From the sequence record PV764601.1: a DNA stretch of 64,000 bases. One strand, written 5' to 3'. A program made the position numbers and the translations under genes. The notes beneath the pieces are model-generated. The model saw only the letters and a program-made list of their open reading frames with translations. It made no database searches and was not told the origin of the DNA. This document shows positions 9,786 to 59,248 of the stretch, in pieces (the stretch's first letter is position 1; each line of letters opens with the position of its first letter).

Positions 9786-10853
9786 TTAGATAAGGGAGCC
9801 CGCGTACACGACGGTAGCAGCACCAAGCTCTTGACGAATGAACAGCGACTTGTCGGTGACGATTTCCACCTTCACTTCCTTGGCTTCCACATGCTCCATA
9901 ATGTCCAGCATCAGGGACGGGTCCAGCTGTAGCGGCTTCTTGATCTTGTGCTTGTTCGGCAGCACTTCCCGCATGTTGACGTAGTTGCCCTTGATCGCCA
10001 GTTCCAGCTTCTTCTTGGCGTTGGACGAAATGGTCAGCGGGGTATTGTTGCCTTCATACGCACTAGCGGCGTTCTCCAGAATGGTCTGGAAGGTATCGCG
10101 CTCAACCTCGAAGTAACCATCGGTCTTGAGATTCGACAGCAGCTGCTTCACCTGATCCGGGGTCAGCGACGATTCACTCTGCGTCAGCGGCATGTTGGCC
10201 TTGAACGCATCGTTGTATGCCGTCAGCGTACCATCGTTCAATTCCAGCTTGTAGCTCTTGCCGTTGCTCAGGGTGTTGAGCGTCTTGAACGTGGCGAGAG
10301 ACAGCTGGAACTCCACTTGACCCAGCGACATACTCGGGTTGTGGTAGTGCGCCATGTGGAAGTCATCGAAGCAAGTAACCGTAGTCGCCTTCTTCGTGCT
10401 GATGACCCACACATACATCGGATCATCAGTGTAGATGTTGGTCAGGCCGACCAGTTCCACCGCCTGATTCAGGGTAGCCTGTGCGTCCGAACTGATCTTG
10501 ATCGGCTTGCTCGACGCGTCGTTGACCATCACGTCTTCAAACGGCAGCACAACGATGTTGCCGCTGTACTTCCGACCATCCACTTCCTTGAAGCTCAGGT
10601 CGCTGGACTTCAAGGTCATTTCGACCTTCTTGCGTCCCTTGATGACACCCGACAGCAGCAGGTGATCCAGAGTGACCTTGCCATTGTTACGCACTTCGGC
10701 TTCAAGCGTCAGTGACACGTTGACACCATTACCAGCCGCGCACACATGCAGACCAGCGGGGTCCGCGATCATGCTGATGTGTTCCGCGCCAGTCAGGTTC
10801 TTTACTTGCGAGATTGCTTTGGTGAGTTCTTTTACACCGACGGTAGCCTGCAT
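9786..10853 (-). CDS. dnaN: DNA polymerase sliding clamp, beta-subunit-like
   Basis: 355 aa, three-domain alpha/beta periodicity (ELTKAISQV..., LNQAVELV..., FQTILENAAS...), position in the replication block. Confidence 0.7.
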   Translation of the reverse strand: MQATVGVKELTKAISQVKNLTGAEHISMIADPAGLHVCAAGNGVNVSLTLEAEVRNNGKVTLDHLLLSGVIKGRKKVEMTLKSSDLSFKEVDGRKYSGNIVVLPFEDVMVNDASSKPIKISSDAQATLNQAVELVGLTNIYTDDPMYVWVISTKKATTVTCFDDFHMAHYHNPSMSLGQVEFQLSLATFKTLNTLSNGKSYKLELNDGTLTAYNDAFKANMPLTQSESSLTPDQVKQLLSNLKTDGYFEVERDTFQTILENAASAYEGNNTPLTISSNAKKKLELAIKGNYVNMREVLPNKHKIKKPLQLDPSLMLDIMEHVEAKEVKVEIVTDKSLFIRQELGAATVVYAGSLI

Positions 10854-53067: not shown

Positions 53068-53793
53068 TCACAGTACGAGTTGATTGAAGCCTTGCAGGGC
53101 CTTTTTCGTCCACATGATGCGATCCTCCAAACCCTTGTCACCGCCGTTGACCTTCTTGGTAACTACCGTAACAGTAGAACGCAGGATGGAATCGTACTCC
53201 GGAGATTTGGGATCATCAGGGAGCACATATTGCGAAGCAATGTCACCCAGCTTGTTGCGTTGCCAGAACCAACCAGCAGTGTAGCTCTTGTCGGGATAGA
53301 GTTCGATCAGAGTAGGATTCTCCAGCACACGCAAGTCACCATAGGTGTCCATGCTGTAGTTGGTCCAATTAGCGCGGCCAGTCAATTGCTTGTCACCGCC
53401 GCCCCTGAAATTCCATCCGTCGTTCAACTCGGTATTACCCAAATTCTTGCGTCCCCACTCACCGCCGTACAGGATGTTGGCGATGGCTACTTGGTTAGCT
53501 GCTCGGATAACAGTTTTCTTGCCGTTCACGACCTTATCAATACGCCCGTATTTCTGAGCGTCCGCCACACTGATACGGTGACGGCCAAAACCATTGATAA
53601 GACCTTCAACGCTGTAATTCATGCTTTCGCGGGTGGCACGGAAGCCACCTGTTTCTACAGCGATCTGTCCGATGAAAATGGACTTGTGCCACGTAGTCTC
53701 GATGCCGTACCGAATGCACGCCCCCTCAAGGGCTTGAGCGTTATCAGGTAGACAGCCAAGACCGATCAGAACGGTTTCCGTGCTCATGGTCAT
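53068..53793 (-). CDS. Endolysin, glycoside hydrolase family 19
   Basis: GQIAVETGGF, FRGGGDKQLTGRANW, AGWFW, VNGGDKGLEDR. Confidence 0.9.
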   Translation of the reverse strand: MTMSTETVLIGLGCLPDNAQALEGACIRYGIETTWHKSIFIGQIAVETGGFRATRESMNYSVEGLINGFGRHRISVADAQKYGRIDKVVNGKKTVIRAANQVAIANILYGGEWGRKNLGNTELNDGWNFRGGGDKQLTGRANWTNYSMDTYGDLRVLENPTLIELYPDKSYTAGWFWQRNKLGDIASQYVLPDDPKSPEYDSILRSTVTVVTKKVNGGDKGLEDRIMWTKKALQGFNQLVL

Positions 53794-53803
53794 GCCATCC
53801 TCT

Positions 53804-54349
53804 TCAGCGATAGGAGTTGTGAAGCCACACGCGAATGTAACGATTCACGGGGACCACTACAGGCAGCTTGTACTTGACCCTCAGTTCATACTCCGCGTTA
53901 AGCGTCCTGTAGTAGGAAGCCATTTCACTACGCATGGCAGAGCTTAGGGCCGAACACTCAACGGCGTTAGCTGCGCTTATTACATCCTCTGTAAGCTTTC
54001 CATCCTCATGCACGTAAGCGCCCGATGCCCACAAGGCCCTCTGCAAACAGCGAGTGGCCAAGTTGAAATTGTTGGGTGCGCACGTTGTCACAGCGAGGGT
54101 AAACAGCTTGTTTGCCGCCTGCTGACATTTGAGTTCGGTCCAAAGTGGATGCCAGAAATACTGACGATACAATTCCTTGGCGGTTGCCGCCGTCATACTC
54201 TTGACGAATTCGTAGTCGGCCTCGACTCCCACCAAGCGGAGGGAGCCAAGGTTCCAACCATAGTTTGTCACAGCCCCAGGGTCAGTAGGATCATCAATCA
54301 AATCCGACTCGATGTTCTGCTGCCTATAGGCAATGTCAAACTCAGCCAT
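53804..54349 (-). CDS. GH108-like muramidase with PG-binding domain, degenerate motifs
   Basis: IESDLIDDPTDPGAVTNYGW, AKELYRQYFW, CLQRAL. Confidence 0.7.
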   Translation of the reverse strand: MAEFDIAYRQQNIESDLIDDPTDPGAVTNYGWNLGSLRLVGVEADYEFVKSMTAATAKELYRQYFWHPLWTELKCQQAANKLFTLAVTTCAPNNFNLATRCLQRALWASGAYVHEDGKLTEDVISAANAVECSALSSAMRSEMASYYRTLNAEYELRVKYKLPVVVPVNRYIRVWLHNSYR

Positions 54350-54352
54350 GAA

Positions 54353-55030
54353 TCATTCCTCAGTGATGAGCCACGCGGCATCTACGAGAAGTGCCGGAGC
54401 CACTTCAACATCACCAAACGCATTGATGTTGATGGGATAGAAGTTGACCTCCACTTCCTCGGAACGATATTCCTCCAGAGCCTTCGCATCGCCCTGCTTA
54501 GTCAGTTCACCGTCGCGTTCCGAGAACGAATTCAGTAGGTCTCGGACCGTCATCAGGTTGAACAGCAAATTTTCGCCAACGGCCTTCGGCAGTTCCTGCT
54601 GACCCAGCTGTTGCAGGGACATGTAGGCACCAATCAGCTTACCCCGACTAATCTTAGTGACACCAGTAGCTTCGGGCTTGGTAACGTCAACAAAGTGCTC
54701 AGACAGGATGGCCATGTTCAGGGGGATGAAACTTTCCTCCTTGAAGTCTGCCGGGTAGCTCAGGAGCTTGACAGTATCGACTTCGACGTCCGAAGCAAGC
54801 ACTTCGTCAGTGGCTGCCTTGAACTGTACGGCGTCTTCGGGAGACAGCGGCTGCTGGTCTTCGCCGTAGTGGCGCTGGGCCAGAGTCCGGCCAGTTGCCT
54901 GCCATGCGTCAATATGGACCTGAGCACGTTGCAGGTATGAACTGACCTTGAACGCCTTGACAGCAGGCAGCCGCAGGCCGGCAACGTACTTGAGAGCTTC
55001 GACAGAGGAGAGAAGAACCTGGAGTTGCAT
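54353..55030 (-). CDS. Tail fibre assembly chaperone-like protein with internal duplication
   Basis: Two similar helical halves (DUF1617-like pattern); downstream of fibre genes. Confidence 0.5.
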   Translation of the reverse strand: MQLQVLLSSVEALKYVAGLRLPAVKAFKVSSYLQRAQVHIDAWQATGRTLAQRHYGEDQQPLSPEDAVQFKAATDEVLASDVEVDTVKLLSYPADFKEESFIPLNMAILSEHFVDVTKPEATGVTKISRGKLIGAYMSLQQLGQQELPKAVGENLLFNLMTVRDLLNSFSERDGELTKQGDAKALEEYRSEEVEVNFYPININAFGDVEVAPALLVDAAWLITEE

Positions 55031-55109: not shown

Positions 55110-55532
55110 TCACGGCAGCGATCCAGACACCAAGATTAGCCCGGTTTTAGGATCGTTACCGGCTACTATGTAGCCTTCACACTTGAGGTCCACTACGGCC
55201 TCAGTACCAGCCTCGATGGTGGCAACCCGCTCCCACCGAAAAGCGCCATTAGGGGCCATCACAGCAATCATGTTGGCACCAACATTCTTAGCCAGCGCTG
55301 TCTGTCCGCTATAGACAGGGAGGCGACTTTGGGCAGCCACCACAACGGAAGCGCCGGAGGCAGTTGTGATGGTTACTACTTCTGCACTGCGCAGGACCCG
55401 ATTTGAGACGGTTCCTTTCAGGCGGATGACCGAGTGTAGATCGTCCACCGCATATACGTCGAGAGTCCTCCCAATGGAGAGCTCTCCGACAGGTACACCT
55501 ACTTCTGAGAGTTGGTCAGAACCAATCATCAC
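55110..55532 (-). CDS. Free-standing degenerate Hint (intein-like) domain protein
   Basis: VGELSIG, VVTITTASGASVVV, WERVATIE...VVDL..EGYIVAG; no N-terminal Cys and no terminal HN. Confidence 0.6.
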   Translation of the reverse strand: MMIGSDQLSEVGVPVGELSIGRTLDVYAVDDLHSVIRLKGTVSNRVLRSAEVVTITTASGASVVVAAQSRLPVYSGQTALAKNVGANMIAVMAPNGAFRWERVATIEAGTEAVVDLKCEGYIVAGNDPKTGLILVSGSLP

Positions 55533-56920
55533 ATCTTCTGCTGGTTGTTGTTGTGGGTGTAGATATAGCGGCCCGGCAACTCACCGGCAGCATAGCTCTG
55601 TCCACCGCAGTTGATGAGCATCACTTCCCGGTTGCCAACCTCCTCGATCTTGACGATGGTTTCCCACTCAGGATCAGCCGCGAAGAATCGTACCGGAAGC
55701 TTGATACCTGCTCGTGCTTCGCCTGCCAGCACGCAATCTCCGTTCTGTAGGGTCAGCGGCGTGGACTTTGAGCACACAAGGGTGACGCCACTCTTTGAGT
55801 AGAGTCGGACACACGGTTGCACTTGACGACGCACACTCAGGACGTGTAGCTCCATAAATTGCAGATCATCCGTCATACCCATGAGGTAGTCGCCTGCCTC
55901 AACAGTGCCTGCGGTCTTTTGGAAGTCAACATAGCTGGTAGCAGCAACGCAACCACCGCCACCACCGCCACCACCGCCGCCGACGCTACCACCCGTCCAA
56001 TTCCATGCGTTCCATCGAATCTCATTGGCCATCAAGCACGTGGCACCTACACGCTGACCACCACCGGGTGTCTGAATGTACACCGAAAAGTTGGCTCGGT
56101 TGTACCATGACAGAGCGCCGTTGTCGTCGTAGTTCCAACGAACGTTGTTGCGTCCCTGTGCAGTCAAGCCAAGGGTGAACCGAATGTCGCGGTCGATGCG
56201 GTATACCCGACCGTCAGGAATGTCTTCGTTGGGGTTCTGTGTAGTGTTCTGCACCACGTATGGATCACTAGCACTACCGAACTGTCCTTGGCCCTTAAAG
56301 TTGTGCCAGATATAGTTGATGAGTGCAGCATCATACCGATTATAGTGATCGGCAGTACCCCAATCTAGATCAGGTGGGTTCTTGCTTTCGTATGGAGCCC
56401 AAGGAGCGTGGCAGAAAGTCTCGTAGTTGTTACCCACACCAGCGAACGGAATCTGTGCCCAGTTACCGGCGGCGTTCATGCGTCCGTTGCTGAAGTTGGT
56501 TTCGGTTCGAGGGATGCCACGATTAGGAGGTGCATATGCACCCGGGCTATCCGTCTTGTAGTTGGTGGAATAGAACCACTGCTGCCACGTACCGTCGTTC
56601 TTGATGATGATGGTGCATCGAGCAGCGAGAAGATCGTTGATGGTAACGCCAGAGCAGCCCACGTAGCAATTTGGGATAGAGATACCTTGCAGGTAGCCTG
56701 CTGTACCTCGGGCTGCGTAAATCTGATTCAGGTCTACCTGATTCTGCGCAAGGATCGCCGTGGATGGAGCTTGCCTGCCATACTGCAAAGGAGCGTACCG
56801 ATCGTAGGTGTCTTGCGTGTTGTTGATGAGGATGCCGGTGTAACCATACCACCGAGTTGTACCCGGAAAGTATGGATCGAACGTGTCATCAAGAGTTTGA
56901 TTCTGAGGGGTGATCCACAT
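55529..56920 (-). CDS. Tail-associated protein with poly-Gly linker and C-terminal Hint domain
   Basis: GGGGGGGGGG-CVAATSYV...WETIVKIEEVG...YAAG...IYTHN; N-terminal DLNQIYAARGTA motif. Confidence 0.8.
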   Translation of the reverse strand: MWITPQNQTLDDTFDPYFPGTTRWYGYTGILINNTQDTYDRYAPLQYGRQAPSTAILAQNQVDLNQIYAARGTAGYLQGISIPNCYVGCSGVTINDLLAARCTIIIKNDGTWQQWFYSTNYKTDSPGAYAPPNRGIPRTETNFSNGRMNAAGNWAQIPFAGVGNNYETFCHAPWAPYESKNPPDLDWGTADHYNRYDAALINYIWHNFKGQGQFGSASDPYVVQNTTQNPNEDIPDGRVYRIDRDIRFTLGLTAQGRNNVRWNYDDNGALSWYNRANFSVYIQTPGGGQRVGATCLMANEIRWNAWNWTGGSVGGGGGGGGGGCVAATSYVDFQKTAGTVEAGDYLMGMTDDLQFMELHVLSVRRQVQPCVRLYSKSGVTLVCSKSTPLTLQNGDCVLAGEARAGIKLPVRFFAADPEWETIVKIEEVGNREVMLINCGGQSYAAGELPGRYIYTHNNNQQKM

Positions 56921-56962: not shown

Positions 56963-59248
56963 TTAGAGAGAATCCAACCGTTCGCGCAGCTGCTTCACTT
57001 CCTCTTCCAGATTTTCGTTCTTGCGAATCAGAATCTGAATGTCGGCTTCGTGATTGTTCTGCACTTCAAGGATATGGAAGAGAGCTTCGTGATGGTACAG
57101 AGCTACCTTCGGGTAGTACAGCTGCCAGAAGTCAGCACCCTTGTCGTAGTGGGCTAGGAATCTAGTGGTCTTGAAGATGCTCTGCGCACCAAACGCAATA
57201 TCCTCCTCGCCGGTGTGCTTCCACTTGACGTGCTTGACTCGCTGCTCACGGATGAACCGAAGAGCGTCAGACAGGTCGAGTACCTTACCGAATTCCTTCA
57301 TGCGTTCGTCCGACGCCGAACCGATGGTACCGTTCGGGTTGATGAAGGCAAGGAAGACCTGACCACCGCCATCACTGTTCATCTGACGGAACTTGAAGCC
57401 GCCCGTACCACCGCCGCGTGCGTTAGTCAGGACCGTTGCGCCATCACCGTAGTCGTTCCAACTAGGGAGGAAACCCTGGCCATAGGCAATACAGTTTGCA
57501 TAGATGTGCAGGCGAGCGCCACGGAAAGCACCCGGGGCAAACACGTCATTGGAGAAGTTGCCGTTAGCGCCAACAACGTTACCCGAAGTGATGATGCCGC
57601 TACCGCTCGCCACGTTCAGACCACCATTGATGGTAGTCTGACCGTTGATGGTACCCGCACCATTGAACGTGAACGCCTTGCTGTTCTTGTCCAGTGAGAA
57701 AGCACTACCCTTACTGATACTGTACCAGCCAAGTCCCGTAGGACTGGAATACAAATACCAGTCGTCGAAGGTATTGCTAATACGCGATTCCCCATACGTG
57801 CCGTTACCCAGCAGTATGGAGCCAGTAGTGATGGTCAGTGGGCCCGCCATCGAAGCAGCGCCCGAAACGTTCATCGTACCGTTGACGTTCAGTGCAGGCA
57901 GCGCGATGGACTGCGCGTTGATAGTCATTGCACCACGACCCGTGGTCGCTGCGCCGCCCGTAACAGAAATGGTAGCAGCAGGACCGTTGGGACTGGCCGA
58001 GGTACCGAAGTTCAGGGTGGACGTTGCATCCGCAGTCGTGCCAACGGACAAGGCAGTACGTACAGTGATCGGGGACTGGATGGTATCACCGCCTGCGATC
58101 TTGACGTAATCGCCAAGCGAGAAATCTGCTTGGGTATACAGCTTAGTCCATGCAGACCAACCCGAAGCACCTACGTTGCGTCGCACATACAGGGCAGGTG
58201 CGGTGCCATTGGTGACATAAGCCGTCTGCACCAGCGAAGCACCAGCCACAGGGTTAAAGTTGTTGCCACCCGCACTGTGCATGGTTTGCACAACACCCGT
58301 CGAACCTGCAACAGGAGCCTGTGCGGCGCCCGATGCCCACTGGTTGAAATACCCCTGAGCGTTGTTAAGGTTGTTGATCGCAGTGTAAGCCGAATCCATC
58401 CAAGAACCATTCTGACCCTTGGTAACACGGGTGTCAGGATCGAAGTTGAGGCTATGCCAGATCGAGCCTGCTTGCGAGGAACCGCCGGGATTGTTCTCGA
58501 CCACAACGTCAGTAGCACGCAGTCGAATACGACGGAATACCTGAGCATCGTTGGTAGGACCAACGGTGAACTCGCCGCCATTAGGGCCGGAGATATACAG
58601 ACGATTGCTGCCGGTCGAAGAACCCGTAGCCGAATAGGTCAGTGCGTATTGACCAATCGTCAGAAGGTCGGTCAGCGAAGTCAGGGCGCCCGTATACGTC
58701 GCGCCAAAGGTCAGGGGCGAGAACAACGTCACCTTGGTGATGGCAGTCGAAGTGGCGTCGATGCGCATGGCATCGAGACCAATCGCATCACGTCCCACCT
58801 TGAACGAGATACCGTCAGAGCCCGGCTGGAAAGTGAACGTGTTGACTTTGCCTGCGCCAACGCCCTCCACGAACAAGGTGAACTTCGGACTCGCATTCGA
58901 GATCGTTAGACCGTTCGCACCGAACACGCTGATTTCTTTGAAGCGTCGGCCGAGGGGCATGTTGTTGGCGCCAAACGGCGACGCACGAACATTGATCTTC
59001 TGACCCGAGGCGAACAGGCCGTCGCTGACTGTCACCGTAGTGACGTTGGATGCGAATGTGACTGCACTGACGTAGCTGTACTGCATGGTAGCTACGGCGG
59101 ACGTGAGAATCTGAACCTGGGTACCTACCTCATACGAAGTTCGCTTGTCACCTTGGATGGTGAACCGATTTGCGGCTTGGTAGGTAGCTGCACTCCAATT
59201 ATTTCCGTATAGGATGTTGGAGAACAGTGTATCCTGATGGGTAATCAT
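56963..59248 (-). CDS. Long tail fibre with C-terminal peptidase S74 chaperone
   Basis: SASDERMK...FGAQSI followed by a terminal coiled coil; IWHSLNFDP fibre motif. Confidence 0.85.
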   Translation of the reverse strand: MITHQDTLFSNILYGNNWSAATYQAANRFTIQGDKRTSYEVGTQVQILTSAVATMQYSYVSAVTFASNVTTVTVSDGLFASGQKINVRASPFGANNMPLGRRFKEISVFGANGLTISNASPKFTLFVEGVGAGKVNTFTFQPGSDGISFKVGRDAIGLDAMRIDATSTAITKVTLFSPLTFGATYTGALTSLTDLLTIGQYALTYSATGSSTGSNRLYISGPNGGEFTVGPTNDAQVFRRIRLRATDVVVENNPGGSSQAGSIWHSLNFDPDTRVTKGQNGSWMDSAYTAINNLNNAQGYFNQWASGAAQAPVAGSTGVVQTMHSAGGNNFNPVAGASLVQTAYVTNGTAPALYVRRNVGASGWSAWTKLYTQADFSLGDYVKIAGGDTIQSPITVRTALSVGTTADATSTLNFGTSASPNGPAATISVTGGAATTGRGAMTINAQSIALPALNVNGTMNVSGAASMAGPLTITTGSILLGNGTYGESRISNTFDDWYLYSSPTGLGWYSISKGSAFSLDKNSKAFTFNGAGTINGQTTINGGLNVASGSGIITSGNVVGANGNFSNDVFAPGAFRGARLHIYANCIAYGQGFLPSWNDYGDGATVLTNARGGGTGGFKFRQMNSDGGGQVFLAFINPNGTIGSASDERMKEFGKVLDLSDALRFIREQRVKHVKWKHTGEEDIAFGAQSIFKTTRFLAHYDKGADFWQLYYPKVALYHHEALFHILEVQNNHEADIQILIRKNENLEEEVKQLRERLDSL

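Follow-up and report, generated by a model that had tools for sequence, protein, structure and literature searches.

A predicted Hint module ending phage tail proteins, and an overlapping gene for a homologue without its catalytic residues, in the jumbo phage PhiXhv-12

The locus

PhiXhv-12 is a virulent jumbo myovirus of 227.6 kb whose host is Xanthomonas hortorum pv. vitians (PMC13340338), and the concern here is a pair of overlapping genes in the 64,000 nucleotides of its sequence record, PV764601.1, that were analysed (the window, whose coordinates are those of the record). Both genes are on the minus strand, as are all the window features given below, and the record labels each of them 'hypothetical protein'. 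The first, open reading frame (ORF) A at 55529..56920, encodes a putative 463-residue precursor in which an N-terminal tail-module body is followed by a glycine linker, a module of the Hint type and a short tail with a lysine; full-length homologues are present in L002, a metagenomic relative of PhiXhv-12, in L003 and in RTH11 and LucasX. The second, ORF B at 55110..55529, encodes a free-standing homologue of the Hint module from which the catalytic residues have gone, and its start overlaps the stop of ORF A.

How is ORF A built? Its N-terminal region of about 110 residues (residues 10-120, 56561..56893) belongs to the phrog_11610 family, another member of which, in both Rb1 and RTH11, is encoded directly 3′ of a tail fibre gene bearing Peptidase_S74. 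Ten consecutive glycines, residues 314-323 (55952..55981), directly precede Cys324, and the predicted scissile bond, Gly323-Cys324, is at the end of that run. The Hint module, recognised through structural modelling, Foldseek and profiles, comprises the 134 residues from Cys324 to Asn457 (55550..55951), with Ser384 and Thr387 as its block-B equivalents and with Trp419, Ala445 and His456-Asn457 invariant. It closes with Thr455-His456-Asn457, after which there are just six residues (55532..55549) before two stops: the +1 residue is Asn and the penultimate one is Lys462 (55535-55537), which an alignment of the tails shows to be invariant in the family.

A Hint fold for the ORF A module

An AlphaFold2 model of the ORF A module, built on an alignment of 58 sequences, has a mean predicted local distance difference test (pLDDT) score of 94.3 and a predicted template modelling score of 0.88. 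When it was compared by Foldseek with the PDB there were 56 matches at an expectation value (E) of <=1e-3, and all 50 of those listed are inteins, Hedgehog C-terminal (HhC) domains or bacterial intein-like (BIL) domains, the best of them having template modelling (TM) scores of 0.7-0.81. In a viral structure library the XacN1-type module came first (TM 0.97), followed by viral inteins. The modelled fold is accordingly settled as Hint, and so the first element of the original prediction, that ORF A ends in a Hint domain, has held.

Sequence searches point the same way, with less force. A profile of six module sequences has only inteins as its top matches in the PDB (gp41-1 at E 0.004, and DnaB inteins), and a wider profile gave weaker matches owing to junk columns at its N-terminal end. 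With the single ORF A sequence there was one marginal intein match amid artefacts of the glycine linker. Scans of Pfam, PHROGs and NCBIfam made no Hint call for ORF A or ORF B, and neither has a Pfam S74 match. The top Foldseek matches suggested a class 3 intein; Cys1 is present and a block-F Cys is not conserved, and this assignment was rejected.

A large family on tail proteins

An exhaustive HMMER profile search of 1.84 billion representative sequences finds the module in 944 representative clusters at E<=1e-3 and in 484 at E<=1e-10; the details of the family given here rest on the best 150 of the 944. The module forms the final ~140 residues of proteins that range from 130 to 3,394 residues in nearly all of the matches listed. 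Among 33 long members Phage-tail_3 is present in nine, FNIII-A_GpJ in six, Rcc01698_C in three and Phage_Tail_Tip in one, and further long members bear PKD, CBM or fn3 domains. The family is thus large, absent from Pfam and NCBIfam, and C-terminal on phage tail proteins. Literature searches that did not extend to subscription journals turned up no description of Hint modules on such proteins.

Cultured phages are represented too. In XacN1 the module is on ORF231. The homologues in RTH11 and LucasX each follow a tail fibre gene, and that of RTH11 (WJJ55140, L012:4890-6224) has a run of more than 20 glycines before Cys1; next to it, where PhiXhv-12 has ORF B, is a DUF1353/phrog_1158 'tail assembly chaperone'. 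In the Stenotrophomonas phage DLP_6 a 1,824-residue protein named 'VlrC' (AAY80_267, L011:973-6447) combines DUF4815 and PKD domains with a glycine run and a Hint module at its end, its gene adjoining that of a baseplate wedge, and tblastn gave a second matching place for the module in the same genome. The genes around the module differ among XacN1, RTH11, DLP_6 and PhiXhv-12.

Conserved positions and the tail lysine

What has been kept in so dispersed a family? Column shares were taken over 58 members, and statistics of the C-terminal flank over 155 retrieved members. In module numbering, position 1 is Cys in 44 of the 58 and Ser in ten, with a gap in the remaining four, and His133, Asn134, Trp96 and Ala122 are present in all 58. 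Ser61, Thr64 and Pro65 are each found in 56, and Thr67 in 46. HMMER alignments to gp41-1 and to the CDC21 intein put Ser61 (Ser384 of ORF A) at the block-B Thr/Ser and Thr64 (Thr387) at the block-B His. The residue just before the module is often Gly (31/54), and the linker there is Gly-rich in most members. What had initially been read from ORF A alone, a Cys1 and a His-Asn that are kept, a +1 residue that is not a nucleophile and a block B without its His, stands, and Ser384 and Thr387 can now be assigned to the block-B sites.

Two points which that first reading missed are the size of the family and a lysine in the tail. Nearly all members (147/155) end 3-20 residues past His-Asn, with a mode of six. 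Most have A, P, V, L, I or M at +1; 11 of these 147 have T or S there and none has Cys. Lysine is found in every one of the 147 short tails, as a single residue in 142 and in the penultimate place in 105, and Arg never substitutes for it, the background frequency of lysine being 2.5%. Could the profile that retrieved these proteins have selected it? It did not, because the matched stretch stopped short of the lysine column in some 120 of the 150 matches listed. In the eight members that extend past the tail there is still a lysine 2-5 residues after His-Asn. The tail is the sole low-confidence part of the ORF A module model, with pLDDT below 50 at positions 138-140, and is modelled as flexible.

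ORF B

ORF B is 139 residues long when read from the ATG at 55529 and 140 when read from the GTG at 55532, so that the length of 140 first given for it applies to the latter start only. The junction reads ATG-TGA-TGA-T, and the ATG of ORF B overlaps the ORF A stop by one nucleotide (four from the GTG). The coupling through ATGA that had been proposed is correct in that the overlap of stop and start is real; the junction itself is TGATG or, from the alternative start, GTGA, and not a plain ATGA. At 55526-55534 the frame of ORF A closes with two consecutive TGA codons, and the ORF B ATG is between them in the -1 frame. That frame relation is common to all four lineages with the pair, and a programmed frameshift fusing the two products was considered and set aside as no slippery heptamer was seen at the junctions. 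Coupling by termination and reinitiation is the simpler reading.

By sequence comparison ORF B is a true homologue of the Hint module whose catalytic residues have gone. A BLASTP match with the module is in register at E 0.002. An hhalign comparison of three ORF B sequences with six modules scores 79% (E 1.6e-5), and one of ORF B with the 152-member module alignment 98.6% (E 6.5e-16, 122 columns); the controls, 20 alignments with shuffled columns and one reversed, reach no more than 0.5%. Reciprocal matches of the hidden Markov models of ORF B and the module are also in register. A PDB sequence search with ORF B gave nothing meaningful. The structural residues Gly20, Gly55, Trp96, Ala122 and Gly123 are retained. 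Met1 of ORF B falls where Cys1 would stand, and in all four ORF B sequences the Cys1 and His-Asn columns are empty, while at block B they have A or T for Ser61, S or A for Thr64 and R, A or W for Pro65. The initial description of a dead, free-standing Hint copy was therefore apt on both counts, homology and loss of Cys1 and His-Asn.

The distribution of ORF B is very narrow, 4-5 clusters among 5.8 billion proteins, and every one of them directly follows an ORF A-type module with an overlapping stop and start. Four lineages have the pair (the group of the window, L002, L003/L004 and L019/L020), with ORF B identities of 30-55% and a frame intact at 137-139 residues. Phages that have the module and are outside those lineages have no ORF B-like ORF nearby. 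The survey of synteny that had been called for hence has two sides: the pair is kept in four lineages, and elsewhere the module is either alone or in a fused tandem. As a general principle the pairing of an active with a dead Hint fails, since the module stands alone in hundreds of tail proteins, those of XacN1, RTH11, LucasX and DLP_6 included. Literature searches, again short of subscription journals, found no active/dead Hint gene pair described, in line with what had been surmised at the outset.

Nonetheless, an intact frame, a coupled start and core residues, all kept in four lineages with identities as low as 30%, indicate that ORF B is under selection. A protein that is dead yet under selection would have to act by binding, and ORF B is probably a binding partner during the folding or assembly of ORF A, though its role is the least secure part of this account. 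The linker, the tail, the released module and the N-terminal body are candidate targets, and partner, chaperone and inhibitor, the roles first proposed for ORF B, are candidate functions.

From where might it have come? Two modules are present in one chain in six family members (P0019, P0046, P0049, P0117, P0121 and P0133), and in each a spacer of 5-7 residues containing a lysine separates the His-Asn of copy 1 from the Cys or Ser1 of copy 2. Copy 2 is without the terminal Asn in P0049, P0121 and P0133 and is degenerate in P0117; in P0046 it is copy 1 that is degenerate. Because the ORF A tail and ORF B are colinear with this fused arrangement, the simplest origin for ORF B would be a tandem copy, deprived of its chemistry and split off as a separate, translationally coupled gene.

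Neighbouring genes

From the baseplate and other tail proteins the gene order runs through a 761-residue fibre-like protein (56963..59248), immediately upstream of ORF A, then ORF A, ORF B, a 225-residue protein (54353..55030), two glycoside hydrolases and the spanins. Every gene between about 64161 and 52061 is on the minus strand. It is because of this context that ORF A is called a tail protein, and its assignment to a tail-fibre/baseplate block, as first suggested, is well supported by these neighbours.

The 225-residue protein is conserved together with ORF B: in the phage collection searched it is present in those four lineages and in no others, and it has no match to a Pfam or PHROGs family. 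Is it a known tail assembly chaperone? That candidate was rejected, there being no family match and no relation to the phrog_1158 protein of RTH11, and the distribution being as narrow as that of ORF B. It is possible that it is a third member of the ORF A/ORF B unit.

In the 761-residue fibre-like protein, BLASTP (E 0.29) sets a Ser-Asp-Glu-Arg-Met-Lys at residue ~646 against the beginning of the region that Pfam matches to Peptidase_S74 in the fibre of RTH11. The Pfam scan does not call S74 in the 761-residue protein, and the alignment suggests that a chaperone domain of the self-cleaving kind may be present there in divergent form. At 53068-54349 (minus strand), past the tail genes and before the spanins, genes for two different cell-wall hydrolases adjoin, one of GH108 plus PG_binding_3-like type and the other a phrog_181 endolysin. 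Just past its endolysin genes, L002 has an extra gene (9881-10720) whose 279-residue product has a weak match to PF03496 (ADP-ribosyltransferase exotoxin-like) and which has no counterpart in the window.

Proposed processing and its alternatives

Type A BILs are defined by an N-terminal nucleophile and a C-terminal His-Asn with no +1 nucleophile (PMC4031507), and the ORF A module has just that pattern of residues. In them a thioester forms, Asn cyclises, and an amine of the C-terminal flank, or water, then resolves the thioester, with cleavage products dominating (PMC4031507). The reading favoured here, to which as a whole a probability of about 0.55 may be given, is that the Hint domain of ORF A removes itself in a similar manner, with resolution assisted by the tail lysine. 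ORF A would be made as a precursor, and its C-terminal domain of 134 residues would act as a type A BIL does. Cys324 would attack Gly323, the last residue of the flexible glycine run, at its carbonyl to give a thioester, and Asn457, aided by His456, would cyclise and so release the six-residue tail. Resolution of the thioester would then fall to an amine of the tail, of which the epsilon-amine of Lys462 is the likeliest and the new alpha-amine an alternative, or to water. Mature ORF A, presumably in the tail of the virion, would end at the glycine run, with or without a small lysine peptide, the Hint domain having been shed. ORF B, translated through the stop/start coupling with ORF A, would act without catalysis.

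That the tail lysine is itself the resolving nucleophile is possible, and is put forward tentatively. The precedent is Tetrahymena BIL2, which splices through the epsilon-amine of a lysine in its C-terminal flank to form an isopeptide bond (PMC8616854). If the phage module did likewise, the family might be a widespread Hint variant, borne by phages, that carries out what could be termed 'isopeptide splicing', an idea to be held just as tentatively, in which the lysine peptide, or in trans the lysine of another protein, becomes joined without ATP to the C-terminus of tail-tip proteins at the glycine run. To our knowledge, Lys-resolved Hint chemistry has earlier been documented only for that eukaryotic BUBL protein. 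Under that scheme ORF B would bind this linker or tail, as a regulator or a placeholder.

The main rival, somewhat unlikely in our estimate, is that the N-terminal junction alone is cut, with water hydrolysing the Gly323-Cys324 thioester to leave a free end at the glycine run and the lysine serving as a helper in lieu of the block-B His. Dominance of cleavage products is what is known of type A BILs (PMC4031507), and with Thr at the block-B His throughout the family some compensating residue is needed; moreover, hydrolysis alone must suffice in those tandem proteins whose last copy is without Asn or tail. However, a His-Asn that is invariant (58/58) would be needless if the N-terminal junction alone reacted, and a lysine in a tail modelled as flexible, and variable in both length and sequence, is unlike a fixed active-site residue. 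Might the thioester be passed to another protein instead? Conjugation in trans, whether to an amine of a neighbouring tail protein, as a BUBL-like cross-link, or, during adsorption, to the host envelope, is less likely than hydrolysis and on the whole improbable, since an invariant lysine on the same chain, within a few residues of the active site, favours an intramolecular reaction, and since no acceptor protein is co-conserved, the neighbours varying among the four phages compared. A flexible glycine C-terminus does resemble ubiquitin-like conjugation, and the placing of the module on tail-tip and host-recognition proteins would suit it. BIL2, for its part, joins its own N-terminal flank to lysines of other proteins without ATP (PMC8616854).

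Lowest in probability, and very unlikely, is that there is no cleavage at all, the Hint-like domain being kept as a structural or receptor-binding end and ORF B being a decaying remnant without function. The absence of the block-B His and the very narrow distribution of ORF B speak for this reading. Yet across members of 30-55% identity position 1 is only Cys or Ser, and both His-Asn and the tail lysine are invariant, which argues for chemistry and not binding, and the frame, coupled start and core residues that ORF B has kept in four lineages, at identities as low as 30%, argue for selection.

Self-removal by the ORF A Hint domain, the favoured reading, has a number of points against it, one of which is at block B. 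Thr64 aligns at the block-B His and is kept in 56/58 members, and hence the family is without that His throughout. The first acyl shift is a step for which the block-B His normally matters, and with it replaced, activity would depend on some compensation. The invariant tail lysine might serve catalysis or structure and not be the nucleophile, and self-removal is proposed, like the self-cleavage or ligation first put forward, on the strength of the family-wide conservation of catalytic positions. There are also the databases: six modules have zero Pfam matches even at E<=10, only one of 58 module members touches an intein model of NCBIfam, and phrog_11610, the family of the N-terminal region, is annotated 'unknown' in PHROGs. 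On the side of ORF B, AlphaFold2 with three sequences gives an all-beta model at a pLDDT of 42.5, too poor to use, and as most phages that have the module are without ORF B it is not needed for the module to work.

Implications

There are hundreds of tail-tip and host-recognition proteins in phages and prophages, of up to 3,400 residues and GpJ-like or bearing PKD or CBM domains, that end in a module which neither Pfam nor NCBIfam flags. The mature C-termini of these proteins, often their business end, are probably mis-stated. In this family nature has, as it were, tried out Hint catalysis with the block-B His missing and an invariant lysine in the C-terminal flank, a sharply conserved feature that hints at testable chemistry, and resolution of Hint thioesters directed by lysine may prove common in viruses. 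Set beside the fused tandems, the ORF A/ORF B pair suggests how a catalytic domain can be copied, detached and made into a partner that has no catalytic part to play.

Comparison with known systems

In sequence the nearest relatives in the PDB are class 1 mini-inteins, with gp41-1 (6qaz/6riz) the best match at E 0.004, and the fold, Cys1 and His-Asn are in common. However, the module is without a +1 Cys, Ser or Thr, a real C-extein or the block-B His, and it is not inserted in a conserved host protein; lacking the +1 nucleophile and the C-extein, it is not an intein.

Type A BILs are a closer parallel. The Clostridium thermocellum BIL (2lwy) has the same fold (TM 0.74), and Cys/Ser1, a C-terminal His-Asn and the absence of a +1 nucleophile are shared. 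Both are found in variable proteins, in the case of BILs often secreted or surface ones, and not as insertions in conserved enzymes. Nevertheless, identity to 2lwy is 15% and it is absent from the PDB sequence-profile matches of the module. The phage module differs too in having Thr for the block-B His and an invariant lysine in a very short C-terminal flank, and in being preceded by a Gly-rich linker at the extreme C-terminus of tail proteins.

With BUBL BIL2 (6y75/6tmm; TM 0.74-0.75) the likeness extends beyond the fold. Its N-terminal flank ends in Gly (PMC8616854), and the phage module likewise follows a glycine run; in BUBL, tandem Hint domains flank a small cargo, and tandem layouts are found in the phage family also. 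BIL2 is, however, eukaryotic, has ubiquitin-like flanking domains, retains its block-B His (H69) and involves zinc, whereas the phage 'cargo' is a peptide of 3-20 residues for whose lysine the corresponding role is a proposal.

The highest fold similarity is to Hedgehog HhC (1at0/6tyy, TM 0.79-0.81). There a C-terminal Hint domain cleaves itself from an N-terminal functional protein at Gly-Cys via a thioester, much as is proposed for ORF A. The differences are that HhC has a sterol-recognition region after its Hint core, passes its thioester to cholesterol and has no C-terminal cleavage driven by His-Asn, whereas ORF A has six residues past the Hint core and no sterol-recognition region.

Peptidase_S74 domains offer a parallel of another sort. 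They are C-terminal self-cutting chaperones of fibres and tailspikes, and the outcome proposed for ORF A would be similar, although their chemistry is that of a Ser-Lys dyad (PMC7824862) and neither it nor their fold is related to the Hint module, so that the likeness is functional only. If the proposal is right, the Hint module would be another, unrelated way of meeting the need that S74 meets for tail fibres.

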